DNA of 64,000 nt from Isurus oxyrinchus (lineage: Eukaryota): the NCBI GenBank assembly GCA_026770705.1, contig JANJGN010001648.1, forward strand, positions 1 through 64,000. Reading direction: 5' to 3'. The notes beneath the pieces are model-generated. The model was not told the DNA's origin and did not search any database. It saw only the letters and a list, made by a program, of their open reading frames with translations. This document shows positions 3,871 to 37,100 of this stretch, piece by piece. The position numbers were made by a program, and so were the translations under genes. The number at the start of each line of letters is the position of its first letter. Within the stretch, counting starts at the first letter, position 1.

Positions 3871-4001
3871 TTACAGGAAGATGACAATTCAGTTGAAAAA
3901 CCGATAGGGTATTTTTCACAGAAGCTAATTGCACAACAGAGAATATACTCAACCATTGAAAAGGAGAAGTTGGGTTTGGTGCGAGCATTGCAGCATTTTG
4001 A

Positions 4002-5480: not shown

Positions 5481-5486
5481 ACAGCC

Positions 5487-7790: not shown

Positions 7791-7907
7791 AACAGGACAT
7801 TCAGCTCTCAGCCAATTTCTCTTGTATTAATTTGTATTAAAGTGCTTTTAAAGATGTGCGTGAGTGCCTTGTATATGGTGAGGACAGGGACAAACTGCAC
7901 TGGGGTT

Positions 7908-8376: not shown

Positions 8377-8596
8377 CAGTGAGTGGGTGTTTGGGGGCAG
8401 AGGGCGTACAGGAACGGGATGACATCCTACAGGCGGCGAGGCTCACACAGTCGAACAGCTGGATGCTTCACAAACTCCTGTCCCCCTCAAATCTTTCCCA
8501 TGGGATTGGGAATCCTTATGTTGCAATAAACTCAGTTGGAGAGGAGCCTGTTTTTAACGCTCGTCTTTGCTGCAGAGATTAAGTGTGCGGACCGAC

Positions 8597-9977: not shown

Positions 9978-9981
9978 TGTG

Positions 9982-10510: not shown

Positions 10511-11190
10511 GGCTGTGCGGCCTAACCTGGGACAATAGCGGCCTGCTTTAGGGCCTAACCCAGAACTGGAGCCCCAGGCTGTGCGGCCTAACCTGGGACT
10601 ATAGCGGCGTGCTTTAGGGCCTAACCCAGAGCTGGAGCCCCAGGCTGTGCGGCCTAACCTGGGACTATAGCGGCCTGCTTTAGGGCCTAACCCAGAACTG
10701 GAGCCCCAGGCTGTGCGGCCTAACCTGGGACTATAGCGGCGTGTTTTAGGGCCTAACCCAGAACTGGAGCCCCAGGCTGTGCGGCCTAACCTGGGACTAT
10801 AGCGGCCTGCTTTAGGGCCTAACCCAGAACTGGAGCCCCAGGCTGTGCGGCCTAACCGGGCACTATAGCGGCCTGCTTTAGGGCCTAACCCAGAACTGGA
10901 GCCCCAGGCTGTGCGGCCTAACCTGGGACTATAGCGGCCTGCTTTAGGGCCTAACCCAGAGCTGGAGCCCCAGGCTGTGCGGCCTAACCTAGGACAATAG
11001 CGGCCTGCTTTAGGGCCTAACCCAGAACTGGAGCCCCAGGCTGTGCGGCCTAACCTGGGACTATAGCAGCCTGCTTTAGGGCCTAACCCACAACTGGAGC
11101 CCCAGGCTGTGCGGCCTAACCTGGGACTATAGCGGCCTGCTTTAGGGCCTAACCCAGAACTGGAGCCCCAGGCTGTGCGGCCTAACCTGG
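10502..11190. repeat. 66-bp tandem repeat, ~10.5 copies (a dimer of ~33-bp subunits), with degenerate copies to ~11255
   Basis: Unit GGAGCCCCAGGCTGTGCGGCCTAACCTGGGACTATAGCGGCCTGCTTTAGGGCCTAACCCAGAACT. Confidence 0.97.
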
Positions 11191-11501
11191 AATGAGGGCC
11201 CAAGGGCGTGTGACCCAATGTGGAACTAGAGGCCCAGGCTGTGCGGCCTAAGGGCCGCAAGATTTGCAGCCTACCCTGGGCGAGCGCCCCACGCGGGATT
11301 GCAGCTGTTAAGCCCAGCAAAGTCATACCCTGGTTGCAACCTTCCAACCAGGAACCTTGCTCCATGTAGAACCTTTTGGGACAGACCTTCCTTCCAAACA
11401 ACGTGAAAGCATATGCGCTGCGGACGAAGGTCACTGGGGGTCATCTGACCAGCCCTGGGAACGCAGGAGGTGCCAATCTGTCTATTGAGGGCAAAAGGAA
11501 A

Positions 11502-11564
11502 CTGAAAGGTCTGGATAGAGCGGACGTTGGGAAGAGTTTCCATTAGTAGGAGAGACTAGGACCC
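11502..11564 (+). mobile_element. Tiny CR1 ORF2 fragment
   Basis: Translates LKGLDRADVGKSFPLVGETRT, similar to the CR1 C-terminal GLDRVD..FPLVGESRTRGH motif. Confidence 0.6.
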
Positions 11565-11596
11565 CATTGTCTCAACTCCCGGCGGGGTTAATACCC

Positions 11597-12021
11597 TCAA
11601 CAGTAACCCAGGTTGTGGCTGTTCCAACCTCGAACCGAGGGAGCCACGATGAGCCACGTGGTAGGGCAGCCTTGACGGTCTCCTCTGACCTCATGAAGAG
11701 TTGTGTGTAGAGCGAGAGACAGCAGCAGCAGCAGCCAAGGCAACAGCACCGACGCCTTTAGACCCAGAGGCTGTAACATCGCAAAGTCTCCCAGCCGGTT
11801 GCTTATCAGGCTCCGCAACACAGCAACCTGAGCTCCTGGTAACTGGGCTGCAGGCAACCCCAAGTCAGAGCTGCAGACCGTCCGTCTCTGACGGAGAATG
11901 CGGGAATCCACAGGGGCTGCTGCATTTACTCGAACTGCACGTCTGCAGTGAAGACAGCTCCTCCAGCGGGCCTGCGAAGGCACGTTCTCGAAAACAGAAC
12001 AGTCACTTCCTTGTTGGTAAC
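11597..12021 (-). other. Candidate exon in a unique island; phase-1 frame GYQQGSDCSVFENVPSQ...VLLPWLLLLLSLAL...GYC*
   Basis: Acceptor gcacttttacag|GTTACC at 12022. The frame is open from the acceptor to the stop at 11597, with an in-frame stop just upstream in the putative intron. No homology recognised; may be UTR. Confidence 0.25.
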
Positions 12022-12120
12022 CTGTAAAAGTGCACTATTCTCTATAACTGTACCCCTCTGGAGCAAGTATGTGTGAGGGAGAGCCGGGGAGTTCGATGTC
12101 AGGCTGAGCACGTCAACTGT

Positions 12121-15100: not shown

Positions 15101-15980
15101 TGACCCAGTGACAGTGAAGGAACGGTGATATATTTCCTAGTCAGGATGGTGAGTGACTTGGAGGGGAACTTCCAGGAGGTGGTGTTCCCATCTATCTGCT
15201 GCCCTTGTCCTTCTAGATGGTAGTGGTCGTGGGTTTGGAAGGTGCTGTCGAAGGAACCTTGGTGAGTTCCTGCAGTGCATCTTGTAGATGGTACACACAC
15301 TGCTGCTACTGTGTGTCGGTGGTGGAGGGAGTGAATGTTTGTGGATGGGGTGCCAGTCAAGCGGGGCTGCTTTGTCCTGGACGGTGTCGAGCTTCTTGAG
15401 TGTTGTGGGAGCTGCACTCACCCAGGCAAGTGGGGAGTATTCCATCACACTCCTGACTTGTGCCTTGTAGATGGTGGACAGACTTTGGGAAGTCAGGAGG
15501 TGAGTTACTCTCCACAGGATTCCCAGCCTCTGACCTGCTCTTGTAGCCACAGTATTTATATGGCTGGTCCCAGTTCAGTTTCTGGTCAATGGTAACCCCC
15601 AGGATGTTGATAGTGGGGGATTCAGTAATGGTGATGCCATTGAACATCAAGGGGCGGTGGTTAGATTCTCTCTTGTTGGGGATGGTCATTGCCTGACACT
15701 TGTGTGGTGTGAATGTTACTTGCCACTTGTCAGCCCAAGCCTGGATATTGTCCAGGTCTTGCTGCATTTGGACATGGACTGCTTCAGTATCTGAGGAGTG
15801 GTGAATGGTGCTGAACATTGTGCAACCATCAGCGAACATCCCCACTTCTGACCTTATGATGGAAGGAAGGTCATTGATGAAGCAGCTGGAGATGGCTGGG
15901 CCGAGGACACTACCCTGAGGAACTCCTGCAGTGATGTCCTGGAGATGAGATGACTGACCTCCAACAACCACAACCGTCTT
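12121..15980 (-). mobile_element. 5'-truncated CR1/L2-group LINE (RT C-terminal half and 3' tail), split by an internal 56-bp array
   Basis: GVPQGSVLGP, FINDLP, MFADG (catalytic DD mutated), QQDLDNIQAWADKWQVTF, YKAQVRSVMEYS, WNSLP. Frameshifted; tail ends at ~12121. Confidence 0.93.
12238..15101. repeat. 56-bp tandem array (~51 copies) derived from LINE sequence
   Basis: Unit GTGGTGTAGGTACACCCACAGTGCTGTTAGGGAGGGAGTTCCAGGATTTTGTCCCT. LINE sequence continues seamlessly on both sides. Confidence 0.98.
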
Positions 15981-16297
15981 TATTTAAACCCACAAAAACT
16001 TGCTGCTGGATTTGAAATTGTCCACTTGCTGGGGGATGAAGGAATGCAAACGCTCCTTCCATTCAAAGGGTTATTGATAAGGAAGAGCCTAGACGGGGGA
16101 TGAGGATCTCAGTGGTTCTCATCCTCCCACAACACAGCATCCCCAGGGCTAAAGCCCCAGGATTGGCAGAATAATAGGTGGATGAAGGGCTGACCTGTGA
16201 GCAGCCTGAAAGTGGGGAGTATCCGTCCCTCAGTGATGGTCAAATAACAATCAGACAGCACCACAGAAGGAGGCAAAGATTAAACTTGAGGAAATAC

Positions 16298-16328
16298 CAT
16301 GCCTGATAGTGACAACCAAGATCGGAGC
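16298..16328 (-). other. Candidate downstream exon of the FCER1G-like gene (APILVVTIRH+G), or start of a terminal exon
   Basis: Acceptor ttttaatctttctgtatcag|GCTCCG and a weak donor ATG|gtattt. A minus-strand AATAAA lies at 15979-15984. No recognisable homology. Confidence 0.25.
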
Positions 16329-16454
16329 CTGATACAGAAAGATTAAAACAAGCTGCTGTTCTCACACAAGACAAGAGCGTTGGGCCAAGATTAATGGCAT
16401 CTCAGAGAACGTGACTGCCAAACACAGAAAATAGCAGCTTTCAGTCAGCTGGTT

Positions 16455-19400
16455 CAGAGTAAATATCGCTCTACACTGTCCCCATCAAACACTCCCAGGA
16501 CAGGTACAGCACAGGGTTAGATACAGAGTAAAGCTCCCTCTACACTGTCCCCATCAAACACTCCCAGGACAGGTACAGCACGGGGTTAGATACAGAGTAA
16601 ATCTCCCTCTACACTGTCCCCATCAAACACTCCCAGGACAGGTACAGCACGGGGTTAGATACAGAGTAAATCTCCCTCTACACTGTCCCCATCAAACACT
16701 CCCAGGACAGGTACAGCACGGGGTTAGATACAGAGTAAATCTCCCTCTACACCGTCCCCATCAAACACTCCCAGGACAGGTACAGCACGGGGTTAGATAC
16801 AGAGTAAATCTCCCTCTACACCGTCCCCATCAAACACTCCCAGGACAGGTACAGCACGGGGTTAGATACAGAGTAAATCTCCCTCTACACTGTCCCCATC
16901 AAACACTCCCAGGACAGGTACAGCACGGTGTTACATACAGAGTAAATCTCCCTCTACACTGTCCCCATCAAACACTCCCAGGACAGGTACAGCACGGGGT
17001 TAGATACAGAGTAAATATCGCTCTACACTGTCCCCAACAAACACTGCCAGGACACATACAGCACGGGGTTAGATACAGAGTAAATCTCCCGCTACACTGT
17101 CCCCAACAAACACTCCCAGGACAGGTACAGCACGGGGTTCGATACAGAGTAAATCTCCCTCTACACTGTCCCCATCAAACACTCCCAGGACAGGTACAGC
17201 ACGGGGTTAGATACAGAGTAAATCTCCGTCTACACTGTCCCCATCAAACACACCCAGGACAGGTACAGCACGGGGTTAGATACAGAGTAAATCTCCGTCT
17301 ACACTGTCCCCATCAAACACTCCCAGGACAGGTACAGCACGGGGTTAGATACAGAGTAAAGCTCCATCTACACTGTCCCCATCAGACACTCACAGGACAG
17401 GTACAGCACAGGATTAGATACAGAGTAAATCTCCCTCTACACTGTCCCCATCAAACAATCCCAGGACAGGTACAGCAAGGTGTTAGATACAGAGTAAATC
17501 TCCCTCGACACTGTCCCCATCAAACACTCCCAGGATAGGTACAGCACGGGGTTAGATACAGAGTAAATCTCCATCTACACTGTCCCCATCAAACACTCCC
17601 AGGACACGTACAGCACGGGGTTAGATACAGAGTAAAGCTCCCTCTACACTGTCTCCATCCAACACTTCCAGGACAGGTACAGCACGGGGTTAGATACAGA
17701 GTAAATCTCCCTCTACACTGTCCCCATCAAACACTCCCAGGACAGGTACAGCACGGGGTTAGATACAGAGTAAATCTACCTCTACACTGTCCCCATCAAA
17801 CACTCCCAGGACAGGTACAGCACGGGGTTAGATACAGAGTAAATCTCCGTCTACACTGTCCCCATCAAACACTCCCAGGACAGGTACAGCACGGGGTTAG
17901 ATACAGAGTAAACCTCCATCTACACTGTCCCCATCAAACACTCCCAGGACAGGTACAGCACAGGATTAGATACAGAGTAAATCTCCCTCTACACTGTCCC
18001 CATCAGACACTCACAGGACAGGTACAGCACGGGGTTAGATACAGAGTAAATCTCCCTCTACACTGTCCCCATCAAACACTCCCAGGACAGGTACAGCACG
18101 GGGTTAGATACAGAGTAAATCTCCATCTACACTGTCCCCATCAAACACTCCCAGGACACGTACAGCACGGGGTTAGATACAGAGTAAAGCTCCCTCTACA
18201 CTGTCTCCATCCAACACTTCCAGGACAGGTACAGCACGGGGTTAGATACAGAATAAATCTCCCTCGACACTGTCCCCATCAAACACTCCCAGGACAGGTA
18301 CGGCACGGGGTTAGATACAGAGTAAATCTACCTCTACACTGTCCCCATCAAACACTCCCAGGACAGGTACAGCACGGGGTTAGATACAGAGTAAAGCACC
18401 CTCTACACTGTCCCCATCAAACACTCCCATGACAGGTACAGCACGGGGTTAGATACAGAGTAAATCTCCCTCTACATTGTCCCCATCAAATACTCCCAGG
18501 ACAGGTACAGAACAGAGTTAGATACAGAGTAATGCTCCCTCTACACTGTCCCCAAAAAACACTCCCAGGACAGGTACAGCACGGGGTTAGATACAGAGTA
18601 AATCTCCCTCTACACTGTCCCCATCAAACACTCCCAGGACAGGTACAGAACAGAGTTATATACAGAATAAATCTCCCTCTACACTGTCCCCATCAAACCC
18701 TCCCAGGACAGGTACAGCACAGGGTTAGATACAGAGTAAATCTCCCTTTACACTGCCCCATCAAACACTCCCAGGACAGGTACAGCACGGGGTTAGATAC
18801 AGAGTAAAGCTCCCCCTACAGTGTCCCCATCAAACACTCCCAGGACAGGTACAGCACGGGGTAAGATACAGAGTAAAGCTCCCCCTACAATGTCCCCATC
18901 AAACACTCCCAGGACAGGTACAGCACGGGTTTAGATACAGAGTAAAGCTCCCTCTACAGTGTCCCCATCAAACACTCCCAGGAGAGGTACAGCACAGTGT
19001 TAGATACAGAGTAAATCTCCCTCTACACTGTCACCTTCAAACACTCCCAGGACAGGTATAGCACCAGGTTAGATACAGAGTAAATCTCCCTCTACACTGT
19101 CCCCATCAAACACTCCCAGGACAGGTACAGCACGGGGTTAGATACAGAGTAAACCTCCCTCTACACTTTCCCCATCACACACTCGCAGGACAGGTACAGC
19201 ACAGAGTGAGATACAGAGTAAATCTCCCTCTACACTGTCCCCATCAAACACTCCCAGGACAGGTACAGCACGGGGTTAGATACAGAGTAAATCTCCCTCT
19301 ACACTGCCCCCATCAAACACTCCCAGGACAGGTACAGCACGGGGTTAGATACAGAGTAAATCTCCCTCTACACTGTCCCCATCAAACACTCCCAGGACAG

Positions 19401-22400
19401 GTACAGCACGGGGTTAGATACAGAATAAATCTCCCTCTACACTGTCCCCATCAAACACTCCCAGGACAGGTACAGCATGGGGTTAGATACAGAGTCAATC
19501 TCCCTCTACACTGACCACATCAAACACTCCCAGCACAGGTACAGCACGGGGTTAGATACAGAGTAAATCTCCCTCTACACTGACCACAGCAAACACTCCC
19601 AGGACAGGTACAGCACGGGGTTAGATACAGAGTAAATCTCCCTCTACACTGTCCCCATCAAACACTCCCAGGACAGGTACAGCACGGGGTTAGATACAGA
19701 GTAAATCTCCCTCTACACTGACCACAGCAAACACACCCAGGACAGGTACAGCACCGGGTTAGATACAGAGTAAAGCTCCCTCTACACTGTCCCCATCAAA
19801 CACTCCCAGGACAGGTACAGCACGGGGTTAGATACAGAGTAAATCTCCCTCTACACTGACCACATCAAACACTCCCAGCACAGGTACAGCACGGGGTTAG
19901 ATACAGAGTAAATCTCCCTCTACACTGACCACAGCAAACACTCCCAGGACAGGTACAGCACGGGGTTAGATACAGAGTAAATCTCCCTCTACACTGTCCC
20001 CATCAAACACTCCCAGGACAGGTACAGCACGGGGTTAGATACAGAGTAAATCTCCCTCTACACTGACCACAGCAAACACACCCAGGACAGGTACAGCACC
20101 GGGTTAGATACAGAGTAAATCTCCCTATACACTGTCCCCATCAAACACTCCCAGGACAGGTACAGCACGGGATTATATACAGAGTAAAGCTCCCTCTACA
20201 CTGTCCCCATCAAACACTCCCAGGACAGGGACAGCACGGGGTTAGATACAGAGTAAAGCTCCCTCTACACTGTACCCATCAAACACTCCCAGGACAGGTA
20301 CAGCACAGGGTTAGATACGGAGTAAATCTCCCTCTACACTGTCCCCATCAAACACTCCCAGGACAGGTACAGCACGGGGTTAGGTACACAGTAAATCTCC
20401 CTCTACACTGTCCCCATCAAACACTCCCAGGACAGGTACAGCACGGGGTTAGGTACACAGTAAATCTCCCTCTACACTGTCCCCATCAAACACTCCCAGG
20501 ACAGGTACAGCATGGGTTTAGATACAGAGTAAATCTCCCTCTACACTGTCCCCATCAAACACTCCCAGGACAGGTACAGCACGGGGTTAGATACAGAGTA
20601 AATCTCCCTCTACACTGTCCCCATCAAACACTCCCAGGACAGGTACAGCACGGGGTTAGATACAGAGTAAATCTCCCTCTACACTGTCCCCATCAAACAC
20701 TCCCAGGACAGGTACAGCACGGGGTTAGACACAGAGTAAATCTCCCTCTACACTGTCCCCATCAAACACTCCCAGGACAGGTACAGCACGGGGTTAGACA
20801 CAGAGTAAAGCTCCCTCTAAACTGTCCCCATCAAACACTCCCAGGACAGGTACAGCACGGGGTTAGACACAGAGTAAAGCTCCCTCTACACTGTCCCCAT
20901 CAAACACTCCCAGGACAGGTACAGCACGGGGTGAGATACAGAGTAAATCTCCCTCTACACTGTCCCCATCAAACACTCCCAGGACGGGTACAGCACGGGG
21001 TTAGATACAGAGTAAATCTCCCTCTACACTGTCCCCATCAAACACTCCCAGGACAGGTACAGCACGGGGTGAGATACAGAGTAAATCTCCCTCTACACTG
21101 TCCCCATCAAACACTCCCAGGACGGGTACAGCACGGGGTTAGATACAGAGTAAATCTCCCTCTACACTGTCCCCATCAAACACTCCCAGGACAGGTACAG
21201 CACGGGGTTAGATACAGAGTAAATCTCCCTCTACACTGTCCCCATCAAACACTCCCAGGACAGGTACAGCACGGGGTTAGATACAGAGTAAATCTCCCTC
21301 TACACTGTCCCCATCAAACACTCCCAGGACAGGTACAGCACGGGGTTAGATACAGAGTAAATCTCCCTCTACACTGTCCCCATCAAACATTCCCAGGACA
21401 GGTACAGCACAGGATTAGATACAGAGTAAATCTCCCTCTACACTGTCCCCATCAATCATTCCCAGGACAGGTACAGCATGGGTTTAGATACAGAGTAAAT
21501 CTCCCTCTACACTGTCCCCATCAAACACTCCCAGGACAGGTACAGCACGGGGTTAGATACAGAGTAAATCTCCCTCTACACTGTCCCCATCAAACACTCC
21601 CAGGACAGGTACAGCACGGAGTTAGATACAGAGTAAATCTCTCTCTACACTGTCCCCATCAAACACTCCCAGGACAGGTACAGCACAGGGTTAGATACAG
21701 AGTAAATCTCCCTCTACACTGTCCCCATCAAACACTCCCAGGACAGGTAAAGCACGGGGTTAGATACAGAGTAAATCTCCCTCTACACTGATCCCATCAA
21801 ACACTCCCAGGACAGGTAAAGCACGGGGTTTGATACAGTGTAAATCTCCCTCTACACTGTCCTCATCAAACACTCCCAGGACAGGTACAGCACGGGGTTA
21901 GATACAGAGTAAAGCTCCCTCTACACTGTCCCCATCAAACACTCCCAGGACAGGTACAGCACGGGGTTAGATACAGTGTAAATCTCTCTCTACACTGTCC
22001 CCATCAAACACTCCCAGGACAGGTACAGCACGGGGTTAGATACAGAGTAAATCTCCCTCTACACTGTCCCCATCAAACACTCCCAGGACAGGTACAGCAC
22101 GGGGTTAGATACAGAGTAAATCTCGCTCTACACTTTCCCAATCAAACATTCCCAGGACAGGTACAGCACGGGGTTAGATACAGAGTAAATCACCATCTCC
22201 ACTGTCCCCATCAAAGACGCCCAGGACAGGTACAGCATGGGGTTAGATACAGAGTAAATCTCCCTCTACACTGTCCCCATCAAACACTCCCAGGACAGGT
22301 ACAGCACGGGGTTAGATACAGAGTAAATCTCCCACTACACTGTCCACATCATACACTCCCAGGACAGGTACAGCACCAGGTTAGATACAGAGTAAATCTA

Positions 22401-24355
22401 CCTCTACACTGTCCCTAATAAACAATCCCAGGACAGGTACAGCACGGGGTTAGATACAGAGTAAATCTCCCTCTACACTGTCCCCATCAAACACTCCCAG
22501 GACAGGTACAGCACGGGGTTAGATACAGAGTAAATCTACCTCTACACTGTCCCTAATAAACAATCCCAGGACAGGTACAGCACGGGGTTAGATACAGAGT
22601 AAATCTACCTCTACACTGTCCCTAATAAACAATCCCAGGACAGGTACAGCACGGGGTTAGATACAGAGTAAATCTCCCTCTGCACTGACCCTAATAAACA
22701 CTCCCAGGACAGGTACAGCACGGGGTTAGATACAGAGTAAATCTCCCTCTACACTGTCCCTAATAAACAATCCCAGGACAGGTACAGCACGGGGTTAGAT
22801 ACAGAGTAAATCTCCCTCTGCACTGACCCTAATAAACACTCCCAGGACAGGTACAGCACGGGGTTAGATACAGAGTAAATCTCCCTCTACACTGCCCCAT
22901 CAAACACTCCCAGGACAGGTACAGCACGGGGTTAGATACAGAGTAAATCTACCTCTACACTGTCCCCATCAAACATTCCCAGGACAGGTACAGTACGGGG
23001 TTAGGTACAGAGTAAATCTCCCTTTACACTGTCCCCATCAAACACTCCCAGGACAGGTACAGCACGGGGTTAGATACAGAGTAAATCTACCTCTACACTG
23101 TCCCCATCAAACACTCCCAGGACAGGTACAGCACGGGGTTAGATACAGTGTAAATCTCCCTCTACACTGTCCCCATCAAACACTCCCAGAACAGGTACAG
23201 CACGGGGTTAGATACAGAGTAAATCTCCCTCTACACTGTCCCCATCAAACATTCCCAGGACAGGTACAGTACGGGGTTAGGTACAGAGTAAATCTCCCTT
23301 TACACTGTCCCCATCAAACACTCCCAGGACAGGTACAGCACGGGGTTAGATACAGAGTAAAGCTCCCTCTACACTGTCCCCATCAAACGCTCCCAGGACA
23401 GGTAGTGCACGGGGTTAGATACAGAGTAAATCTCCCTCTACACTGTCCCCATCAAACACTCCCAGGACAGGTACAGCACGGGGTTAGATACAGAGTAAAT
23501 CTCCCTCTACACTGTCCCCATCAAACACTCCCAGGACAGGTACAGCACGGGGTTAGATACAGAGTAAATCTCCCTCTACACTGTCCCCATCAAACACTCC
23601 CAGGACAGGTACAGCACGGGGTTAGATACAGAGTAAATCTCCCTCTACACTGTCCACATCAAATACTCCCAGGACAGGTACAGCACGGGGTTAGATACAG
23701 AGTAAATCTCCCTCTACACTGTCCCCATCAAACACTCCCAGGACAGGTACAGCACTGGGTTAGATACAGAGTAAAGCTCCCTCTCCACTGTCCCCATCAA
23801 TCACTCCCAGGACAGGTACAGCACGGGGTTAGATACAGAGTAAATCTCCCTCTACACTGTCCCCATCAAACACTCCCAGGACAGGTACATCACGGGGTTA
23901 GATACAGAGTAAATCTCCCTTTACACTGTCCCCAATAAACACTCCCAGGACAGGTACAGCACGGGGTTAGATACAGAGTAAAGCTCCCTCTACACTGTCC
24001 CCATCAAACACTCCCAGGACAGGTACAGCACGGGGTTAGATACAGAGTAAATCTCCCTCTACACTGTCCCCATCAAACACTCCCAGGACAGGTACAGCAC
24101 GGGGTTAGATACAGAGTAAATCTCCCTCTACACTGTCCACATCAAATACTCCCAGGACAGGTACAGCACGGGGTTAGATACAGAGTAATATCCCTCTACA
24201 CTGTCCCCATCAAACACTCCCAGGACAGGTACAGCACGGGGTTAGATACAGAGTAAATCTCCCTCTACACTGTCCCCATCAAACACTGCCAGGACAGGTA
24301 CAGCACGGGGTTAGATACAGAGTAAATCTCCCTCTACACTGACCACAGCAAACAC
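16455..24355. repeat. 69-bp tandem repeat array B, ~114 copies
   Basis: Same unit and orientation as array A, with local variant clusters (ctgaccacagc ~19500-20080; ccctaataaacaatc ~22410-22840). Confidence 0.98.
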
Positions 24356-24432
24356 ACAAAACAGTTTTTAAGAGCATTGCTCTCTTTAGGGTTTCAGGGA
24401 AATTAAGTCTTCATGTTTAAGTTTCTACTCAC

Positions 24433-24507
24433 TGGCATTTCCTTCCGAGATTCCACTTTCCCAGACTTCAGTTCATGGTAAACATCCTTCTGGTTACCTC
24501 GAATTTC
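24433..24507 (-). CDS. FCER1G: FCER1G-like cytoplasmic exon: EIRGNQKDVYHELKSGKVESRKEMP, completes ITAM YEEI-x7-YHEL
   Basis: Minus strand: catttttcag|GAAATTCGA...ATGCCA|gtgagt. 75 nt, phase 0-0, open. If the donor is not used, the frame continues VSRNLNMKT to TAA at 24403-24405. Confidence 0.85.
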
Positions 24508-24534
24508 CTGAAAAATGTACACAGTTTTTTGGCA

Positions 24535-25268
24535 TTAACCCTCTCACCCACCTCTCCCCATTTACACACAATGAGCAGCCTGTTCCCTATCGGAGGGGGA
24601 TTAACCCTCTCACCCACCTCTCCCCATTTACACACACCGGGCAGCCTGTTCCCTATCGGAGGGGGATTAACCCTCTCACCCACCTCTCCCCATTTACACA
24701 CACCGGGCAGCCTGTTCCCTAGTCGATGGGGATTAACCCTCTCACTCACCTCTCCCCATTTACACACACCGGGCAACCTGTTCCCTATTGGAGGGGGATG
24801 TACACTCTAACACACATCTCCACATTTACACACACCGGGCAGCCTGTTCCTTATCGGAGGGGGATTAACCCTCTCACCCACGTATCCCCATTTACACACA
24901 CCGGGCAGCCTGTTCCCCATCGGAGTGGGATTTAACCTCATACCAACCTCTCCCCTTTTACACACACTGGGCAGTCTGTTCCCTTTCGGAGTGGGATTAT
25001 CCCTCTCACCCACCTCTCCCCATTTACACACACCGGGCAGCCTGTTCCCTATCGGAGGGGGATTAACCCTCTCACCCACCTCTCCCCATTTACACACAAT
25101 GGGCAGCCTGTTCCCTATCGGAGGGGGATTAACCCTCTCACCCACCTCTCCCCATTTACACACAGCCTGTTCCCTATCGGAGGGGGATTAACCCTCTCAC
25201 CCACCTCTCCCCATTTACACACACCGGGCAGCCTGTTCCCTATCGGAGGGGGATTAACCCTCTCACCC
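24535..25268. repeat. 66-bp intronic minisatellite, ~11 copies
   Basis: Unit TTAACCCTCTCACCCACCTCTCCCCATTTACACACACCGGGCAGCCTGTTCCCTATCGGAGGGGGA. Confidence 0.97.
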
Positions 25269-25274
25269 AATGGT

Positions 25275-25476
25275 GCCTTCTCTCCTGGAGCAGGGGAGAT
25301 TGAGAGGGGATTCAATCAAGTTGTTTTAAAGGTGGGAGAGTTTCCATCGCTTGCAGGTGGAGAAGCGGTCCCCGGCGGTAGGAGGGTCGGTAACCAGAGG
25401 GTCACAGGTTGAGGAGAATCAGGGTAAAGGACCAGGAGGGCCCGACGAGGACCAGGGCAGATGTCTTCACCCAGCG
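25275..25476 (+). mobile_element. Old CR1 ORF2 C-terminal fragment
   Basis: Degenerate FSPGAGEIER/RLRGDSIK, GGSVTRG(H) and FTQR motifs. Confidence 0.6.
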
Positions 25477-25719
25477 TCAGACGTTACGTTGCACGGGGAG
25501 TGCGGATTTGAATTGAGGGGAGGGATGTTTGTATCTGGGACGTGGAGAGTGGTAGTATTGCTGCCGGTGACAGGCATTGGTCAGTTTCTTGCCTGTATCC
25601 CGATATTGGAACTTCGAGTCACCTCTACAACACAGAGTCCGAATCCTCGCACTCCCCCACCAAACCCTCCAACCCCTCCCCCCCCCACCCCCCCCAACAA
25701 AGCATCGGAATTTCCATAC

Positions 25720-25764
25720 CTCATACACGGAGGGTTGGCCAGAAGCTTTCTTACGCATCTGTAA
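25720..25764 (-). CDS. FCER1G: FCER1G-like cytoplasmic exon (exon 3 equivalent): LQMRKKASGQPSVYE, supplies the first ITAM tyrosine
   Basis: Minus strand: polypyrimidine tract cttttctttacaccttattcag|TTACAGATGCGT...GTGTATGAG|gtatgg. 45 nt, phase 0-0, open. Resembles human exon 3 IQVRKAAITSYE. Confidence 0.85.
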
Positions 25765-26007
25765 CTGAATAAGGTGTAAAGAAAAGAATGAGTCAAGGTC
25801 AGCGCGTGAGGCACAAACCCTCTCTCTCCTCCATCACTTCTCCGAACTCTTTTTCAAAAGACACACGTTCTCCGCCCCACCCCCACCCCCCACCCCCCCG
25901 TTGACCTAGTGGCTTCAAGCTGAGTCTTGGCAAACCTGCTCTGAATTATCTCCAAAATTAGGGGGTGCCCTCACTCCCAAACAGCGGAGAGCGTCTACTG
26001 AATCCCA

Positions 26008-27622
26008 CTGATGTTAACCCCTCTCCCCCCAGCACCCTGTGTTACTGACTGTATCTCTACTGATGTTAATCCAGCTCCCTCACACTGTCACTCAGTAAAC
26101 ACTCTCCCCCCAGCACCCTGTGTTACTGACTGTATATCTACTGATGTTAATCCAGCTCTCTCACACTGTCACTCAGTAACCCCTCTCCCCCAGCACCGTG
26201 TTACTGACTGTATCTCTACTGATGTTAATCCAGCTCCCTCACACTGTCACTCAGTAACCCCTCTCCCCCAGCACGCTGTGTTACTGACTGTATCTCTACT
26301 GATGTTAATCCAGCTCCCTCACACTGTCACTCAGTAACCCCTATCCCCCAGCACACTGTGTAACTGACTGTATCTCTACTGATGTTAATCCAACTCCCTC
26401 ACACTGTCACTCAGTAACCCCTCTCCCCCCAGCACCCTGTGTTACTGACTGTATCTCTACTGATGTTAATCCAGCTCCCTCGCACTGTCACTCAGTAACC
26501 CCTCTCCCCCAGCGCCCTGTGTTACTGACTGTATCTCTACTGATGTTAATCCAGCTCCCTCACACTGTCACTCAGTAACCCCTCTCTCCCCAGCACCCTG
26601 TGTTACTGACTGTATCTCTACTGATGTTAATCCAGCTCCCTCACACTGTCACTCAGTAACCCCTCTCCCCCCAGCTCCCTGTGTTACTGTCTGTATCTCT
26701 ACTGATGTTAATCCAGCTCCCTCACACTGTCACTCAGTAACCCATCTCCCCCCAGCACCCTGTGTTACTGTCTGTATCTCTACTGATGTTAATCCAGCTC
26801 CCTCACACTGTCACTCAGTAACCCCTCTCCCCCCAGCACCCTGTGTTACTGACTGTATCTCTACTGATGTTAATCCAGCTCCCTCACACTGTCACTCAGT
26901 AACCCCTCTCCCCCAGCACCCTGTGTTACTGACTGTATCTCTACTGATGTTAATCCAGCTCCCTCACACTGTCACTCAGTAACCCCTCTCCCCCAACACC
27001 CTGTGTTACTGACTGTATCTCTATTGATGTTAATCCAGATACCTCACACTGTCACTCAGTAACCCCTCTTCCGCCAGCAATCTGTGTTACTGACTGTATC
27101 TCTACTGATGTTAATCCAGATACCTCACACTGTCTCTCAGTAACCCCTCTCCCCCAACGCCCTGTGTTACTGACTGTATCTCTACTGATGTTAATCCAGC
27201 TCCCTCACACTGTCACTCAGTAACCTGTCTCCCCCCAGCACCCTGTGTTACTGACTGTATCTCTACTGATGTTAACCCAGCTCCCTCACACTGTCACTCA
27301 GTAAACCCTCTCCCCCAGCGCCCTGTGTTACTGACTGTATCTCTACTGATGTTAATCCAGCTCTCTCACACTGTCACTCAGTAACCCCTCTCCCCCCAGC
27401 ACCCTGTGTTACTGACTGTATCTCTACTGATGTTAATCCAGCTCTCTCACACTGTCACTCAGTAACCCCTCTCCCCCAGCGCCCTGTGTTACTGACTGTA
27501 TCTCTACTGATGTTAATCCAGCTCCCTCACACTGTCACTCAGTAACCCCTCTCCCCCCAGCACCCTGTGTTACTGACTGTATCTCTACTGATGTTAATCC
27601 AGCTCCCTCACTCAGTCACCCC
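26008..27622. repeat. 80-82-bp intronic minisatellite, ~20 copies
   Basis: Unit CTGATGTTAATCCAGCTCCCTCACACTGTCACTCAGTAACCCCTCTCCCCCCAGCACCCTGTGTTACTGACTGTATCTCTA. Confidence 0.97.
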
Positions 27623-27634
27623 TCTAGCCCTTAC

Positions 27635-27726
27635 CTTCAGGCGACAGTAGAGAGCAGTTAAAACAATTCCATAGACGAACAGGGCAGCATCCAAGACATA
27701 ACAGACTTCTGGTGGCTGGAGCGCTT
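27635..27726 (-). CDS. FCER1G: FcR-gamma (FCER1G)-like adaptor, exon with short ectodomain and transmembrane helix (exon 2 equivalent): xALQPPEVCYVLDAALFVYGIVLTALYCRLK
   Basis: Minus strand reads ...cccctctcccctaatccag|AAGCGCTCC...CGCCTGAAG|gtaagg. The exon is 92 nt, phase 1 to phase 0. The peptide matches the FcR-gamma TM signature (human [31 protein letters not shown]), including the dimerisation Cys, TM Asp and YCRLK. Confidence 0.93.
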
Positions 27727-27889
27727 CTGGATTAGGGGAGAGGGGAGTTATTAAGACAAGTTCCATTGCCTATTCAGCCCCAATGACAGTGCCTCCAGCA
27801 TCTCCTGGCCCCGCTCACAGCCTGCCCTGCCTTCTGGGATCGAGCCGAGTGTCTGGCTTTGCCCTATGAGAGGACAGATAATGCACACA

Positions 27890-28035
27890 CCACATCGCTG
27901 TGGGTCTGAATCAGTCCTGGGCCAGAGTCGAGTGCCAAGGCTCCTGACACTGGTGGATTCTAATAACTTACCACTCTGATCACCATCAGCACCACCGAGA
28001 ATACCTTTTCATTCCAGGTTGGGTGAATAAATTGT
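27890..28035 (-). mobile_element. Degraded SINE fragment, probably the same family as 2213-2344
   Basis: Reverse strand CTGGAATGAAAAG matches CTGGAATTAAAAG at 2332-2344. The remainder is assigned from recalled similarity only. Confidence 0.4.
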
Positions 28036-28199
28036 TCACGTTTGCGAGCATGGACAATTATACTCCTTGTGTCTCAGTCTCCCCCGGTCTCGCTCTCTCA
28101 CACTGGTTATCTGTCCTTCTCTCTCTCCCCTTCTCTCACTCTCTCTGACTCCTAGTTTCCGTCTCTCACAGTGTCACATTCAGCCTCATGCTCTGACTG

Positions 28200-31100
28200 T
28201 CCCCTTCTCTCTCTGTGTACATCTCTCCCTCTGTCACATTTTGCTCTCTCTGTGTACATCTCTCCCTCTGTCACATTTTACTCTCTCTGTGTACATCTCT
28301 CCCTCTCTCTCTGTCACCTTTTACTCTCTCTGTGTACATCTCTCCCTCTCTCTGTCACCTTTTACTCTCTGTGTACATCTCTCCCTCTCTCTCTGTCACC
28401 TTTTACTCTCTGTGTACATCTCTCCCTCTCTCTGTCACCTTTTACTCTCTCTGTACATCTCTCCCTCTCTCTGTCACCTTTTACTCTCTCTGTACATCTC
28501 TCCCTCTCTCTCTCTGTCACCTTTTACTATCTCTCTGTGTACATCTCTCCCTTTCTCTGTTACAGTTTACTCTCTCTCAGTGTACATCTCTTCCTCTCTC
28601 TGTCACCTTTTACTCTCTCTGTGTACATCTCACTCTCTCTCTGTCACCTTTTACTCTCTGTGTACATCTCTCCCTCTCTCTGTCACCTTTTACTCTCTCT
28701 GCACATCTCTCCCTCTCTCTGTCACCTTTTACTCTCTGTGTACATCTCTCCCTCTCTCTCTCTGCCACCTTTTACTCTCTCTGTACATCTCTCCCTCTCT
28801 CTCTCTGTCACCTTTTACTCTCTCTCTGTGTACATCTCTCCCTCTCTCTGTTACAGTTTACTCTCTCTCTGTGTACATCTCTCCCTCTCTCTGTCACCTT
28901 TTACTCTCTGTGTACATCCCTCCCTCTCTTTGTCACCTTTTACTCTCTCTCTGTGTACATCTCTCCCTCTCTCTGTTACAGTTTACTCTCTCTCTGTGTA
29001 CATCTCTCCCTCTCTCTGTTACAGTTTACTCTCTCTGTGTACATCTCTTCCTCTCTCTGTCACCTTTTACTCTCTCTCTGTGTACATCTCTTCCTCTCTC
29101 TGTCACCTTTTACTCTCTCTGTGTACATCTCTCCCTCTCTCTGTCACCTTTTACTCTCTCTCTGTACATCTCTCCCTCTCTCTGTCACCTTTTACTCTCT
29201 CTGTGTAAATCTCTCTCTCTCTCTGTCACCTTTTACTCTCTGTGTACATCTCTCCCTCTCTCTCTCTGTCACCTTTTACTCTCTCTGTACATCTCTCCCT
29301 CTCTCTCTCTGTCACATTTTACTCTCACTCTGTGTACATCTCTCCCTCTCTCTGTTACAGTTTACTCTCTCTCTGTGTGCATCTCTCCCTCTCTCTGTTA
29401 CAGTTTACTCTCTCTCTGTGTACATCTCTCCCTCTCTCTGTTACAGTTTACTCTCTCTCTGTGTACATCTCTCCCTCTCTCTCTGTCACCTTTTACTCTC
29501 TGTGTACATCTCTCCCTCTCTCTGTCACCTTTTACTCTTTCTCTGTGTACATCTCTCCCTCTCTCTCTCTGTCACCTTTTACTCTCTCTGTGTACATCTC
29601 TCCCTCTCTCTGTCACCTTTTACTCTCTCTGTGTACATCTCTCCCTCTCTCTCTCTGTCACCTTTTACTCTCTGTGTACATCTCTCTCTCTCTCTGTCAC
29701 CTTTTACGCTCTCAGTGTACATCTCTCCCTGTCTCTCTCTGTCACCTTTTACTCTCTGTGTACATCTCTCCCTCTCTCTGTCACCTTTTACTCTCTCTGT
29801 ACATCTCTCCCTCTCTCTCTCTGTCACCTTTTACTCTCTCTGTGTACATCTCTCCCTCACTCTGTCACCTTTTACTCTCTCTGTGTACATCTCTCCCTCT
29901 CTCTGTCACCTTATACTCTCTCTGTGTACATCTCTCCCTCTCTCTCTCTGTCACCTTTTACTCTCTGTGTACATCTCTCCCTCTCTCTCTCTGTCACCTT
30001 TTACTCTCTGTGTACATCTCTCCCTCTCTCTGTCACCTTTTACTCTCTCTGTACATCTCTCCCTCTCTCTGTCATCTTTTACTCTCTCTCTCTGTGTACA
30101 TCTCTCCCTCTCTCTGTCACCTTTTACTCTCTCTCTGTGTACATCTCTCCCTCTCTCTCTGTCACCTTTTACTCTCTCTGTGTACATCTTTCCCTCTCTC
30201 TCTCTGTCACCTTTGACTCTCTGTGTACATCTCTCCCTCTCTCTCTCTGTCACCCTTTACTCTCTTTGTGTACATCTCTCCCTCTCTCTCTCTGTCACAT
30301 TTTAGTCTCTCTGTGTACATCTCTCCCTCTCTCTCTCCCTGTCACCTTTTACTCTCTCTCTGTGTACATCTCTGCCTCTCTCTCTCTCTGTCACCTTTAA
30401 CTCTCTGTGTACATCTCTCCCTCTCTCTCTCTGTCACATTTTACTCTCTCTCTGTGTACATCTCTCCCTCTCTCTGTTACAGTTTACTCTCTCTCTGTGT
30501 ACATCTCTCCCTCTCTCTGTCACCTTTTACTCTTTCTCTGTGTACATCTCTCCCTCTCTCTCTCTGTCACCTTTTACTCTCTCTGTGTACATCTCTCTCT
30601 CTCTCTCTGTCACCTTTTACGCTCTCAGTGTACATCTCTCCCTGTCTCTCTCTGTCACCTTTTACTCTCTGTGTACATCTCTCCCTCTCTCTGTCACCTT
30701 TTACTCTCTGTGTACATCTCTCCCTCTCTCTCTCTGTAACCTTTTACTCTCTCTGTGTACATCGCTCCCTCTCTCTCTCTGTCACCTTTTACTCTCTGTG
30801 TACATCTCTCCCTCACTCTGTCACCTTTTACTCTCTGTGTGTACATCTCTCCCTCTCTCTGTCACCTTATACTCTCTCTGTGTACATCTCTCCCTCTCTC
30901 TCTCTGTCACCTTTTACTCTCTGTGTACATCTCTCCCTCTCTCTCTCTGTCACCTTTTACTCTCTGTGTACATCTCTCCCTCTCTCTCTGTCACCTTTTA
31001 CTCTCTGTGTAGATCTCTCCCTCTCTCTCTCTGTCACCTTTTACTCTCTGTGTACATCTCTCCCTCTCTCTGTCACCTTTTACTCTCTCTGCACATCTCT

Positions 31101-34100
31101 CCCTCTCTCTGTCACCTTATACTCTCTCTGTGTACATCTCTCCCTCTCTCTCTCTGTCACCTTTTACTCTCTCTGTGTACATCGCTCCCTCTCTCGCTCT
31201 GTCACCTTTTACTCTCTTTGTGTACATCTCTCCCTCTCTCTCTCTGTCACCTTTTACTCTCTCTCTGTGTACATCTCTCCCTCTCTCTCTCTGTCACATT
31301 TTACTCTCTCTGTGTACATCTCTCTCTCTCTCTCTCCCTGTCACCTTTTACTCTCTCTCTGTGTACATCTCTCCCTCTCTCTCTCTGTCACCTTTTACTC
31401 TCTGTGTACATCTCTCCCTCTCTCTCTCTGTCACCTTATACTCTCTGTGTACATCTCTCCCTCTCTCTGTCACCTTTTACTCTCTGTTTACATCTCTCCT
31501 TCTCTCTGTCACCTTTTACTCTCTGTGTACATCTCTCCCTCTCTCTGTCACCTTTTACTCTCTCTCTGTACATCTCTCCCTCTCTCTCTCTGTCACCTTT
31601 TACTCACTCTGTGTACATCTCTCCCTCTCTCTGTCACCTTTTACTCTCTCTCTGTACATCTCTCCCTCTCTCTCTCTGTCACCTTTTACTCTCTCTGTGT
31701 ACATCTCTCCTTCTCTCTCTCTGTCACCTTTTACTCTCTGTGTACATCTCTCCCTCTCTCTGTCACCTTTTACTCTCTGTTTACATCTCTCCCTCTCTCT
31801 GTCACCTTTTACTCTCTCTCTGTGTACATCTCTCCCTCTCTCTCTCTGTCACCTTTTACTCTCTGTGTACATCTCTCCCTCTCTCTGTCACCTTTTACTC
31901 TCTGTTTACATCTCTACCTCTCTCTGTCACCTTTTACTCTCTCTGTGTACATCTCTCCCTCTCTCTCTCTGTCACCTTTTACTCTCTCTGTGTACATCTC
32001 TCCCTCTCTCTCTCTGTCACCTTTTACTCTCTCTGTGTACATCTCTCCCTCTCTCTCTCTCTGTCACTTTTTACTCTCTCTCTGTGTACATCTCTCCCTC
32101 TCTATCACTGTCACCTTTTACTCTCTCTCTGTGTACATCTCTCCCTCTCTCTCTCTGTCACCTTTTACTCTCTGTGTGTACATCTCTCCCTCTCACTCTG
32201 TCACCTTTTATTCACTCTCTGTGTACATCTCTCCCTCTCTCTCTCTGTCACCTTTTACTCTCTGTGTACATCTCTCCCTCTCTCTGTCACCTTTTACTCT
32301 CTGTGTACATCTCTCCCTCTCTCTCTCTGTCACCTTTTACTCTCTCTGTGTACATCTCTCCCTCTCTCTCTCTGTCACCTTTTACTCTCTCTGTGTACAT
32401 CTCTCCCTCTCTCTCTCTGTCACCTTTTACTCTCTCTGTGTACATCTCTCCCTCTCTCTCTCTCTGTCACTTTTTACTCTCTCTCTGTGTACATCTCTCC
32501 CTCTCTATCACTGTCACCTTTTACTCTCTCTCTGTGTACATCTCTCCCTCTCTCTCTCTGTCACCTTTTACTCTCTGTGTGTACATCTCTCCCTCTCACT
32601 CTGTCACCTTTTATTCACTCTCTGTGTACATCTCTCCCTCTCTCTCTCTGTCACCTTTTACTCTCTGTGTACATCTCTCCCTCTCTCTCTCTGTCACCTT
32701 TTACTCTCTCTGTGTACATCCCTCTCTCTCTCTCTCTGTCACCTTTTACTCTCTGTGTACATCCCTCCCTCTCTCTCTCTGTCACATTTTACTCTCTCTG
32801 TGTACATCTCTCTCTCTCTCTCTCCCTGTCACCTTTTACTCTCTCTCTGTGTACATCTCTCCCTCTCTCTCTCTGTCACCTTTTACTCTCTGTGTACATC
32901 TCTCCCTCTCTCTCTCTGTCACCTTATACTCTCTGTGTACATCTCTCCCTCTCTCTGTCACCTTTTACTCTCTGTTTACATCTCTCCCTCTCTCTGTCAC
33001 CTTTTACTCTCTGTGTACATCTCTCCCTCTCTCTGTCACCTTTTACTCTCTCTGTGTACATCTCTCCCTCTCTCTCTCTGTCACCTTTTACTCTCTGTGT
33101 ACATCTCTCCCTCTCTCTCTCTGTCACCTTTTACTCACTCTGTGTACATCTCTCCCTCTCTCTGTCACCTTTTACTCTCTCTCTGTACATCTCTCCCTCT
33201 CTCTCTCTGTCACCTTTTACTCTCTCTGTGTACATCTCTCCTTCTCTCTCTCTGTCACCTTTTACTCTCTGTGTACATCTCTCCCTCTCTCTGTCACCTT
33301 TTACTCTCTGTGTACATCTCTCCCTCTCTCTGTCACCTTTTACTTTCTGTGTACATCTCTCCCTCTCTCTGTCACCTTTTACTCTCTCTCTGTGTACATC
33401 TCTCCCTCTCTCTGTCACCTTTTACTCTCTCTGTGTACATCTCTCCCTCTCTCTCTCTGTCACCTTTTACTGTCTCTGTGTACATCTCTCCCTCTCTCTC
33501 TGTCACCTTTTACTCTCTCTGTGTACATCTCTCCCTCTCTCTCTCTCTGTCACTTTTTACTCTCTCTCTGTGTACATCTCTCCCTCTCTATCTCTGTCAC
33601 CTTTTACTCTCTTTCTGTTTACATCTCTCCCTCTCTCTCTCTGTCACCTTTTACTCTCTGTGTGTACATCTCTCCCTCTCACTCTGTCACCTTTTATTCA
33701 CTCTCTGTGTACATCTCTCCCTCTCTCTCTCTGTCACCTTTTACTCTCTGTGTACATCTCTCCCTCTCTCTGTCACCTTTTACTCTCTGTGTACATCTCT
33801 CCCTCTCTCTCTCTGTCACCTTTTACTCTCTGTGTACATCTCTCCCTCTCTCTCTCTGTCACCTTTTACTCTCTCTGTGTACATCCCTCTCTCTCTCTCT
33901 GTCACCTTTTACTCTCTGTGTACATCCCTCCCTCTCTCTCTCTGTCACCTTTTACTCTCTGTGTACATCTCTCCCTCTCTCTCTCTGTCACCTTTTACTC
34001 TCTGTGTACATCTCTCCCTCTCTCTCTCTGTCACCTTATACTCTCTGTGTACATCTCTCCCTCTCTCTGTCACCTTTTACTCTCTGTTTACATCTCTCCC

Positions 34101-37100
34101 TCTCTCTGTCACCTTTTACTCTCTGTGTACATCTCTCCCTCTCTCTGTCACCTATTACTCTCTCTGTGTACATCTCTCCCTCTCTCTCCCTGTCACCTTT
34201 TACTCTCTGTGTACATCTCTCCCTCTCTCTCTCTGTCACCTTTTACTCACTCTGTGTACATCTCTCCCTCTCTCTGTCACCTTTTAATCTCTCTCTGTAC
34301 ATCTCTCCCTCTCTCTCTCTGTCACCTTTTACTCTCTCTGTGTACATCTCTCCTTCTCTCTGTCACCTTTTACTCTCTGTGTACATCTCTCCCTCTCTCT
34401 GTCACCTTTTACTCTCTCTCTGTACATCTCTCCCTCTCTCTCTCTGTCACCTTTTACTCACTCTGTGTACATCTCTCCCTCTCTCTGTCACCTTTTACTC
34501 TCTCTCTGTACATCTCTCCCTCTCTCTCTCTGTCACCTTTTACTCTCTCTGTGTACATCTCTCCTTCTCTCTCTCTGTCACCTTTTACTCTCTGTGTACA
34601 TCTCTCCCTCTCTCTGTCACCTTTTACTCTCTGTTTACATCTCTCCCTCTCTCTGTCACCTTTTACTCTCTCTCTGTGTACATCTCTCCCTCTCTCTCTC
34701 TGTCACCTTTTACTCTCTGTGTACATCTCTCCCTCTCTCTGTCACCTTTTACTCTCTGTTTACATCTCTACCTCTCTCTGTCACCTTTTACTCTCTCTGT
34801 GTACATCTCTCCCTCTCTCTCTCTGTCACCTTTTACTCTCTCTGTGTACATCTCTCCCTCTCTCTCTCTCTGTCACTTTTTACTCTCTCTCTGTGTACAT
34901 CTCTCCCTCTCTATCACTGTCACCTTTTACTCTCTCTCTGTGTACATCTCTCCCTCTCTCTCTCTGTCACCTTTTACTCTCTGTGTGTACATCTCTCCCT
35001 CTCACTCTGTCACCTTTTATTCACTCTCTGTGTACATCTCTCCCTCTCTCTCTCTGTCACCTTTTACTCTCTGTGTACATCTCTCCCTCTCTCTGTCACC
35101 TTTTACTCTCTGTGTACATCTCTCCCTCTCTCTCTCTGTCACCTTTTACTCTCTCTGTGTACATCTCTCCCTCTCTCTCTCTGTCACCTTTTACTCTCTC
35201 TGTGTACATCTCTCCCTCTCTCTCTCTGTCACCTTTTACTCTCTCTGTGTACATCTCTCCCTCTCTCTCTCTCTGTCACTTTTTACTCTCTCTCTGTGTA
35301 CATCTCTCCCTCTCTATCACTGTCACCTTTTACTCTCTCTCTGTGTACATCTCTCCCTCTCTCTCTCTGTCACCTTTTACTCACTGTGTGTACATCTCTC
35401 CCTCTCACTCTGTCACCTTTTATTCACTCTCTGTGTACATCTCTCCCTCTCTCTCTCTGTCACCTTTTACTCTCTGTGTACATCTCTCCCTCTCTCTCTC
35501 TGTCACCTTTTACTCTCTCTGTGTACATCCCTCTCTCTCTCTCTCTGTCACCTTTTACTCTCTGTGTACATCCCTCCCTCTCTCTCTCTGTCACATTTTA
35601 CTCTCTCTGTGTACATCTCTCTCTCTCTCTCTCCCTGTCACCTTTTACTCTCTCTCTGTGTACATCTCTCCCTCTCTCTCTCTGTCACCTTTTACTCTCT
35701 GTGTACATCTCTCCCTCTCTCTCTCTGTCACCTTATACTCTCTGTGTACATCTCTCCCTCTCTCTGTCACCTTTTACTCTCTGTTTACATCTCTCCCTCT
35801 CTCTGTCACCTTTTACTCTCTGTGTACATCTCTCCCTCTCTCTGTCACCTTTTACTCTCTCTGTGTACATCTCTCCCTCTCTCTCTCTGTCACCTTTTAC
35901 TCTCTGTGTACATCTCTCCCTCTCTCTCTCTGTCACCTTTTACTCACTCTGTGTACATCTCTCCCTCTCTCTGTCACCTTTTACTCTCTCTCTGTACATC
36001 TCTCCCTCTCTCTCTCTGTCACCTTTTACTCTCTCTGTGTACATCTCTCCTTCTCTCTCTCTGTCACCTTTTACTCTCTGTGTACATCTCTCCCTCTCTC
36101 TGTCACCTTTTACTCTCTGTGTACATCTCTCCCTCTCTCTGTCACCTTTTACTTTCTGTGTACATCTCTCCCTCTCTCTGTCACCTTTTACTCTCTCTCT
36201 GTGTACATCTCTCCCTCTCTCTGTCACCTTTTACTCTCTCTGTGTACATCTCTCCCTCTCTCTCTCTGTCACCTTTTACTGTCTCTGTGTACATCTCTCC
36301 CTCTCTCTCTGTCACCTTTTACTCTCTCTGTGTACATCTCTCCCTCTCTCTCTCTCTGTCACTTTTTACTCTCTCTCTGTGTACATCTCTCCCTCTCTAT
36401 CTCTGTCACCTTTTACTCTCTTTCTGTTTACATCTCTCCCTCTCTCTCTCTGTCACCTTTTACTCTCTGTGTGTACATCTCTCCCTCTCACTCTGTCACC
36501 TTTTATTCACTCTCTGTGTACATCTCTCCCTCTCTCTCTCTGTCACCTTTTACTCTCTGTGTACATCTCTCCCTCTCTCTGTCACCTTTTACTCTCTGTG
36601 TACATCTCTCCCTCTCTCTCTCTGTCACCTTTTACTCTCTGTGTACATCTCTCCCTCTCTCTCTCTGTCACCTTTTACTCTCTCTGTGTACATCCCTCTC
36701 TCTCTCTCTGTCACCTTTTACTCTCTGTGTACATCCCTCCCTCTCTCTCTCTGTCACCTTTTACTCTCTGTGTACATCTCTCCCTCTCTCTCTCTGTCAC
36801 CTTTTACTCTCTGTGTACATCTCTCCCTCTCTCTCTCTGTCACCTTATACTCTCTGTGTACATCTCTCCCTCTCTCTGTCACCTTTTACTCTCTGTTTAC
36901 ATCTCTCCCTCTCTCTGTCACCTTTTACTCTCTGTGTACATCTCTCCCTCTCTCTGTCACCTTTTAATCTCTCTGTGTACATCTCTCCCTCTCTCTCCCT
37001 GTCACCTTTTACTCTCTGTGTACATCTCTCCCTCTCTCTCTCTGTCACCTTTTACTCACTCTGTGTACATCTCTCCCTCTCTCTGTCACCTTTTAATCTC

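Follow-up and report, generated by a model that had tools for sequence, protein, structure and literature searches.

Can a stretch of shark DNA that consists largely of satellite repeats harbor a working gene for an immune signaling adaptor, and if so, which one? The question is raised by positions 1 to 64,000 of contig JANJGN010001648.1 of Isurus oxyrinchus (assembly GCA_026770705.1), a 64-kb stretch analyzed at its full length and here called the window. An original prediction, made from the letters alone, had proposed that three small minus-strand exons lying among satellite arrays encode an adaptor resembling the Fc receptor common gamma chain (FcR-gamma, gene FCER1G) and bearing an ITAM (immunoreceptor tyrosine-based activation motif), a functional gene of a probable cartilaginous fish that would easily stay hidden in repeat-masked annotation. 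Our analysis bears out most of this proposal. Very probably, the exons in the window are numbers 2, 3, and 4 of a lamnid FCER1G orthologue, a six-exon shark gene in which the ITAM visible here is not the classical one.

The three exons are intact and canonically bordered. On the minus strand, exon 2 lies between an AG at 27728-27727 and a GT at 27634-27633, exon 3 between an AG at 25766-25765 and a GT at 25719-25718, and exon 4 between an AG at 24509-24508 and a GT at 24432-24431, all read directly from the sequence. Translation of 27724-27635, 25764-25720, and 24507-24433 met no stop, and the peptides are those originally proposed. Exon 2 opens at 27726 with two bases that finish a split codon (phase 1), and the remaining junctions are in phase 0. 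The motif PPEVCYVLD in exon 2 conforms to the pattern C-Y-x-L-D, with the Cys beside the membrane and the Asp within the membrane segment, and these four residues hardly vary in the alignment. Over the junction of exons 3 and 4, YEEI-x7-YHEL agrees with the ITAM consensus YxxL/I-x6-8-YxxL/I.

Transcribed sequences contain the same splices. When the unique stretch 27600-28222 was searched against public runs, seven small runs were found, each with 7 to 10% of the sampled words, about what exon 2 alone would yield. Four runs from four studies, three labeled as organism A and one (X7) as organism B, were aligned to 24300-28222. The evidence comes from assembled contigs, one per run and 511 to 763 nucleotides (nt) in length; the record of X7 is not in the table of contig pieces. 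In the contigs of all four runs, 25764 is joined to 27635 (a skip of 1870 nt) and 24507 to 25720 (a skip of 1212 nt), the skipped stretches being bounded by GT..AG when read on the minus strand; these are exactly the junctions that had been predicted. No letter of the listed exon pieces of run X1 differs from the window, and the depth of X1 is zero in the unique intron bins, which marks the joined form as derived from RNA rather than from a DNA retrocopy. In exon 4, 2 to 3 letters of the X2 and X3 contigs are not those of the window, and the organism B contig has four exon differences, three of them synonymous as judged by reading the codons. Exons 2 to 4 are real, spliced, and transcribed.

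Two further splice sites were noted at these exons. Two acceptor AGs stand 6 nt apart at 25759-25766 on the minus strand (attcag/ttacag/); the contigs use the first only, and use of the second would remove LQ, the first two residues of exon 3, in frame. Read-through of the exon 4 donor, after which the protein would stop 11 codons later, was rejected, since all four contigs splice onward.

Beyond the window, the contigs lead into a known protein, the 116-residue RefSeq entry XP_041036563.1 of Carcharodon carcharias (here P0144), named [quoted passage not shown] P0144 shares 69 of the 70 residues encoded by the three exons (99% identity); exons 2 and 3 are identical to it, and the single difference lies in exon 4, where the codon at 24465-24463 is TCT (Ser) in the window and X1 and CCT (Pro) in X2, X3, and X7, as in P0144. 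This Ser/Pro difference could be a polymorphism, the mark of a second gene copy, or a difference between species. Upstream of exon 2, the contig reads ..NLVFLLQVIPA and then the split codon G/AA, and NLVFLLQVIPA-E corresponds to residues 6 to 17 of P0144, within its signal peptide. Downstream of exon 4, the last 30 letters of the contig read KEEGIYTGLD, identical to P0144 at its second ITAM. P0144 has the same two-ITAM layout and contains the complete C-terminal motif G[IV]YTGL-x7-YE[TS]L.

The assignment to FCER1G was examined by searching the exons singly, with P0144 as the full-length proxy. Exon 2 (30 residues) matched the Pfam family PF11628 (TCR_zetazeta) with 55.6 bits against a cut-off of 25, a match far beyond chance. 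Among PDB entries, human FcR-gamma was matched end to end by exon 2 with 41.7 bits and CD3-zeta with 35.2 bits; for P0144, the scores were 67.5 bits and 51.3 bits, respectively. Exon 4 alone had no Pfam or PDB match. A HMMER scan of 1.84 billion protein representatives gave 129 matches, of which 127 contain LYC[RHK]xK and the other two are proteins of about 950 to 1000 residues without it. The best match is the FCER1G-like protein of Scyliorhinus canicula. Next to the membrane, the window reads LYCRLK-LQMRKKA, which is similar to LYCRLK-IQVRKAA of the gamma chain and unlike LFLRVK-FSRSAD of zeta. The human and mouse FcR-gamma chains (PDB 8ywa, 8zgs, and 8k7t) share with the shark chain the ectodomain Cys, the membrane Asp, LYCRLK, [IL]Q[VM]RK, and, as read from P0144, a C-terminal YTGL-x7-YE[TS]L.

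The gene is larger than the original prediction had envisaged: its three exons and two junctions stand, and together with P0144 the contig ends place them as exons 2 to 4 of six. Missing from the window are exon 1 (signal peptide), a 21-nt exon for KEEGIYT, and the last exon (GLD...YESL...stop); that KEEGIYT would occupy an exon of its own is suggested by the structure of the mammalian and Xenopus genes. Exons 1, 5, and 6 were not found in the 64 kb with patterns of 20 to 30 nt from the contig ends at up to 3 mismatches, nor did six FcR-gamma proteins locate them in a very permissive tblastn search. Since they lie outside the window, intron 1 must exceed 36.3 kb and intron 4 must exceed 24.4 kb, both being largely satellite. 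The ITAM claimed from the window is likewise present as a consensus motif over exons 3 and 4, but it is the additional, membrane-proximal one and not that shared with mammalian FcR-gamma; the classical YTGL-x7-YESL, as read from P0144, would be in exons 5 and 6. A donor (gtg/gtaagt) near 27976/27975, which follows a short hydrophobic frame (27961-28020, minus strand) 250 nt upstream of exon 2 and so resembles the end of a signal-peptide exon, was rejected as exon 1 because its phase is wrong, the ATG frame has an in-frame stop, and no contig uses it. The parts of the gene within the window, including the satellite arrays between the exons that had been described, are collected in Table 1.

Table 1. 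Parts of the FcR-gamma gene located in the 64-kb window
Feature	Positions	Strand	Description	Support
Exon 2	27635..27726	-	Short ectodomain with dimerizing Cys, membrane segment with Asp, LYCRLK stop-transfer; start phase 1	PF11628, E value 4.2e-15; human FcR-gamma residues 18-47; contig pieces on 27635-27729 in four runs
Exon 3	25720..25764	-	45 nt; juxtamembrane LQMRKKA plus YE, which opens the first tyrosine module of the putative extra ITAM	Joints at both ends in four runs; identical to P0144 residues 48-62
Exon 4	24433..24507	-	75 nt, phase 0 to 0, cassette-type; remainder of the putative membrane-proximal ITAM (..EI-x7-YHEL) plus linker	Joint 24507/25720; contig continues past 24433 into KEEGIYTGLD
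Intron 1, 3' part	27727..64000	-	496 nt unique, then 43-bp satellite (28223-63996, ~839 copies)	
Intron 2	25765..27634	-	1870 nt, mostly 81-bp satellite (26015-27619, 20 copies)	
Intron 3	24508..25719	-	1212 nt, with 66-bp satellite (24534-25269, 11 copies)	
Intron 4, 5' part	1..24432	-	69-bp satellite (16455-24355, 5485-7796), other minisatellites, reverse transcriptase fragment of a long interspersed nuclear element (LINE)	

Some observations weigh against this picture. The runs are labeled RNA by guess only. Because the full gene is not visible in 64 kb, the continuity of the locus rests on the transcripts and the orthologue. The Pfam ITAM profile PF02189 was matched neither by exon 4 nor by the first motif of P0144, so that the ITAM of exons 3 and 4 fits the consensus pattern only and not the Pfam model; this profile has 20 positions and is weak even on the classical ITAM of P0144 (14 bits against a cut-off of 22.2). 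Finally, a feature search with the Atlas language model placed clusters automatically named CD3 zeta first, at 0.94, before FcR-gamma-like clusters at 0.92, a ranking kept as a lead only because the alignment scores outweigh it.

That last result raises the possibility that the gene encodes CD3-zeta (CD247) or a zeta-like paralogue, a signaling chain of the T cell receptor. CD3-zeta belongs to the same Pfam membrane-segment family, which bears its name, and it forms a disulfide-linked dimer, as the shark chain would; its ITAMs are likewise each split over two exons with similar spacing. The shark chain resembles it in having more than one ITAM, and its two ITAMs align in order, at a weak 12.5 bits, with those numbered ITAM2 and ITAM3 in human zeta; in NCBI, the model from Chiloscyllium punctatum goes under the name "CD3 zeta chain-like." Against this, FcR-gamma outscores zeta whether the query is exon 2 or the whole of P0144, the nearest small proteins are without exception of the gamma type (127 of 127), and 10 of the 11 listed elasmobranch models are named FCER1G or FCER1G-like. 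Zeta itself has three ITAMs, about 160 residues (~164 aa), and the juxtamembrane LFLRVKF, and it scores lower against the window gene; the shark chain, with P0144 as its proxy, has two ITAMs, 116 residues, a gamma-type LYCRLKL, and a C-terminal ITAM of the gamma type (GIYTGL...TYESL). Taken together, the alignment scores, the chain length, and the sequences next to the membrane and in the C-terminal ITAM make a zeta identity improbable.

Even less credit is due to the idea that the window holds a dead duplicate or haplotig fragment of three exons and that the transcripts stem from another, complete copy: exons 1, 5, and 6 are indeed absent from the 64 kb, and X2 and X3 depart from the window in exon 4, but X1 matches the listed exon pieces letter for letter at the exact splice sites of the window, none of the three exons is damaged or lacks a canonical site, and very long satellite-filled introns suffice to account for the absent exons.

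Accepting the gene as an FCER1G orthologue, its most distinctive feature is the 75-nt exon at 24507-24433, by which it has six exons and departs from the five-exon structure of mammals and teleosts. P0144 aligns with human FcR-gamma in two blocks, 7 to 54 and 87 to 111, and the interval between them is an insert made up of the end of exon 3 and exon 4. Mammalian FcR-gamma (86 aa, five exons, one ITAM) has a YE(K) remnant at the place where the first shark ITAM starts. Six exons are not without precedent, since the FcR-gamma genes of Xenopus laevis were reported by Guselnikov et al. (2003 and 2015; PMC4536121) to have six exons instead of five, an arrangement called unique to X. laevis; the added exon makes a second ITAM, and an exon border falls inside the first tyrosine module (PMC4536121). 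The shark exons 3 and 4 show the same arrangement, exon 4 being the counterpart of the "additional exon." As amphibian FCER1G shares the six-exon structure, it is a variant within the orthologue group.

In the sequences that we retrieved, two ITAMs occur in all sampled sharks and rays (except one mis-built whale shark model), frogs, salamanders, and caecilians, and the tyrosines of both ITAMs are invariant across 13 two-ITAM sequences. A single ITAM is found in lungfish, coelacanth, reedfish, sturgeon, teleosts, and amniotes, and in several of these YE(K/T) is left as a remnant where exon 3 ends. Annotated isoforms that lack exactly exon 4 exist in the catshark Scyliorhinus torazame, the caecilian Geotrypetes, and the newt Lissotriton, so that a one-ITAM or a two-ITAM chain may be made by a choice of splicing, possibly in the window species as well. 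The amphibian and shark exons differ in detail: the first module of the extra ITAM is YEEI in sharks and YE[HQP]L in most amphibians, and against a profile of the amphibian counterparts of exon 4 the shark exon scored 2.9 bits, a value reached by about 5% of shuffles, so that homology of the extra exon is not established by sequence alone. The distribution suggests, but does not prove, a two-ITAM ancestry. On balance, we consider it somewhat probable that a two-ITAM, six-exon FcR-gamma was ancestral to jawed vertebrates, that it was kept in the sampled sharks, rays, and three amphibian orders, that it was lost repeatedly (in ray-finned fishes, coelacanth, lungfish, and amniotes) through loss of the in-frame cassette exon 4, leaving the YE(K) remnant still present in human FcR-gamma, and that skipping of exon 4 serves as a regulated switch between one and two ITAMs.

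If it behaves as mammalian FcR-gamma does, the product would be a small adaptor, a type I membrane protein with a length of about 116 residues. Two chains would form a disulfide homodimer through the Cys that lies outside the membrane and close to it, and the membrane Asp would hold the dimer to ligand-binding activating receptors by pairing with a basic residue of their membrane segment. Once such receptors cluster, Src-family kinases would phosphorylate the tyrosines of the ITAMs, to which the tandem SH2 domains of a Syk-family kinase would then bind. Where mammalian and teleost chains have one ITAM, the shark chain would bring two to this process, the extra one over exons 3 and 4 and the classical one in exons 5 and 6, which with two ITAMs per chain would make four docking sites per dimer. 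YEEI, the first module of the extra ITAM, is the preferred motif of Src-family SH2 domains. In the window species, dimerization, receptor pairing, recruitment of Syk, and regulated skipping of exon 4 are all predicted from the relatives of the gene.

The surroundings of the exons are largely repetitive, with about 80% of the window being tandem repeat. The largest array is the 43-bp satellite inside intron 1, which covers at least 35.8 kb, reaches the window end, and has an extreme strand asymmetry (GC skew of about -0.69 and AT skew of about -0.63 on the plus strand). The 69-bp satellite forms two arrays, at 5485-7796 (33 copies) and 16455-24355 (115 copies). Contigs that match the edge of this satellite (24300-24430) have summed depths of 70,000 to 177,000 in all four runs, which indicates that the 69-bp repeat is very abundant in those libraries. 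Four more minisatellites lie at 7908-8374 (19/9 bp), 8600-9976 (31 bp), 10502-11190 (66 bp), and 12240-15110 (56 bp). An open frame at 15360-15971 on the minus strand, inside intron 4, encodes the C-terminal half of a reverse transcriptase (RVT_1; E value, 3e-13) and represents a LINE fragment, the only recognizable product in a search of the open reading frames of 1-16500. A further ATG-started open reading frame at 3606-4463 (minus strand, 285 aa) has no Pfam match and is possibly a decayed mobile element. Rfam gave no match on 1-28300. There are no neighboring genes in the window, whose other content is satellites and the LINE fragment.

The gene is not hidden in the sense originally proposed. 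It is not a new gene, since the 99% identical great white shark protein is already annotated, and word-indexed searches found that NCBI annotates FCER1G models in at least 11 elasmobranchs; besides Carcharodon, these include models from Scyliorhinus, Mustelus, Stegostoma, Hemiscyllium, Rhincodon, Narcine, Mobula, Hypanus, and Leucoraja. In two species, the models are both mis-built and mis-named. The protein of the basking shark Cetorhinus maximus (XP_078391581.1) lacks the signal-peptide exon and is named "uncharacterized." It has four residue differences over exons 2 to 4, against one for P0144, from which the window sequence is assigned to a lamnid, either the great white shark or a species very near to it. 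Its model starts within the equivalent of intron 1 of the window, and its N terminus, ..ELVLISPLSPHPE, resembles a translation of the window intron. The "CD3 zeta chain-like" model of Chiloscyllium punctatum (XP_072420861.1) also lacks the signal-peptide exon. The coding sequence for 116 residues is scattered among satellite-filled introns across more than 64 kb, which explains how these two models lost the signal exon and acquired their names, and the concern over annotation in repeat-rich introns was therefore partly justified.

In the literature, our search for shark FcR-gamma found no paper describing it. Akula et al. (2014; PMC4016189) reported that the FcR gamma chain was not found in cartilaginous fish, and a 2026 review cites PMC4016189 for the lack of the Fc receptor family in cartilaginous fishes. 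The spliced transcripts described here, which by the run labels stem from two shark organisms, contradict the absence of the FcR gamma chain reported in PMC4016189. The gene as such is ordinary and already annotated, and the mildly new point is the two-ITAM, six-exon form of FcR-gamma in elasmobranchs. An extra ITAM exon in sharks bears on the evolution of the gamma and zeta adaptors and offers a natural contrast between chains with one ITAM and chains with two.

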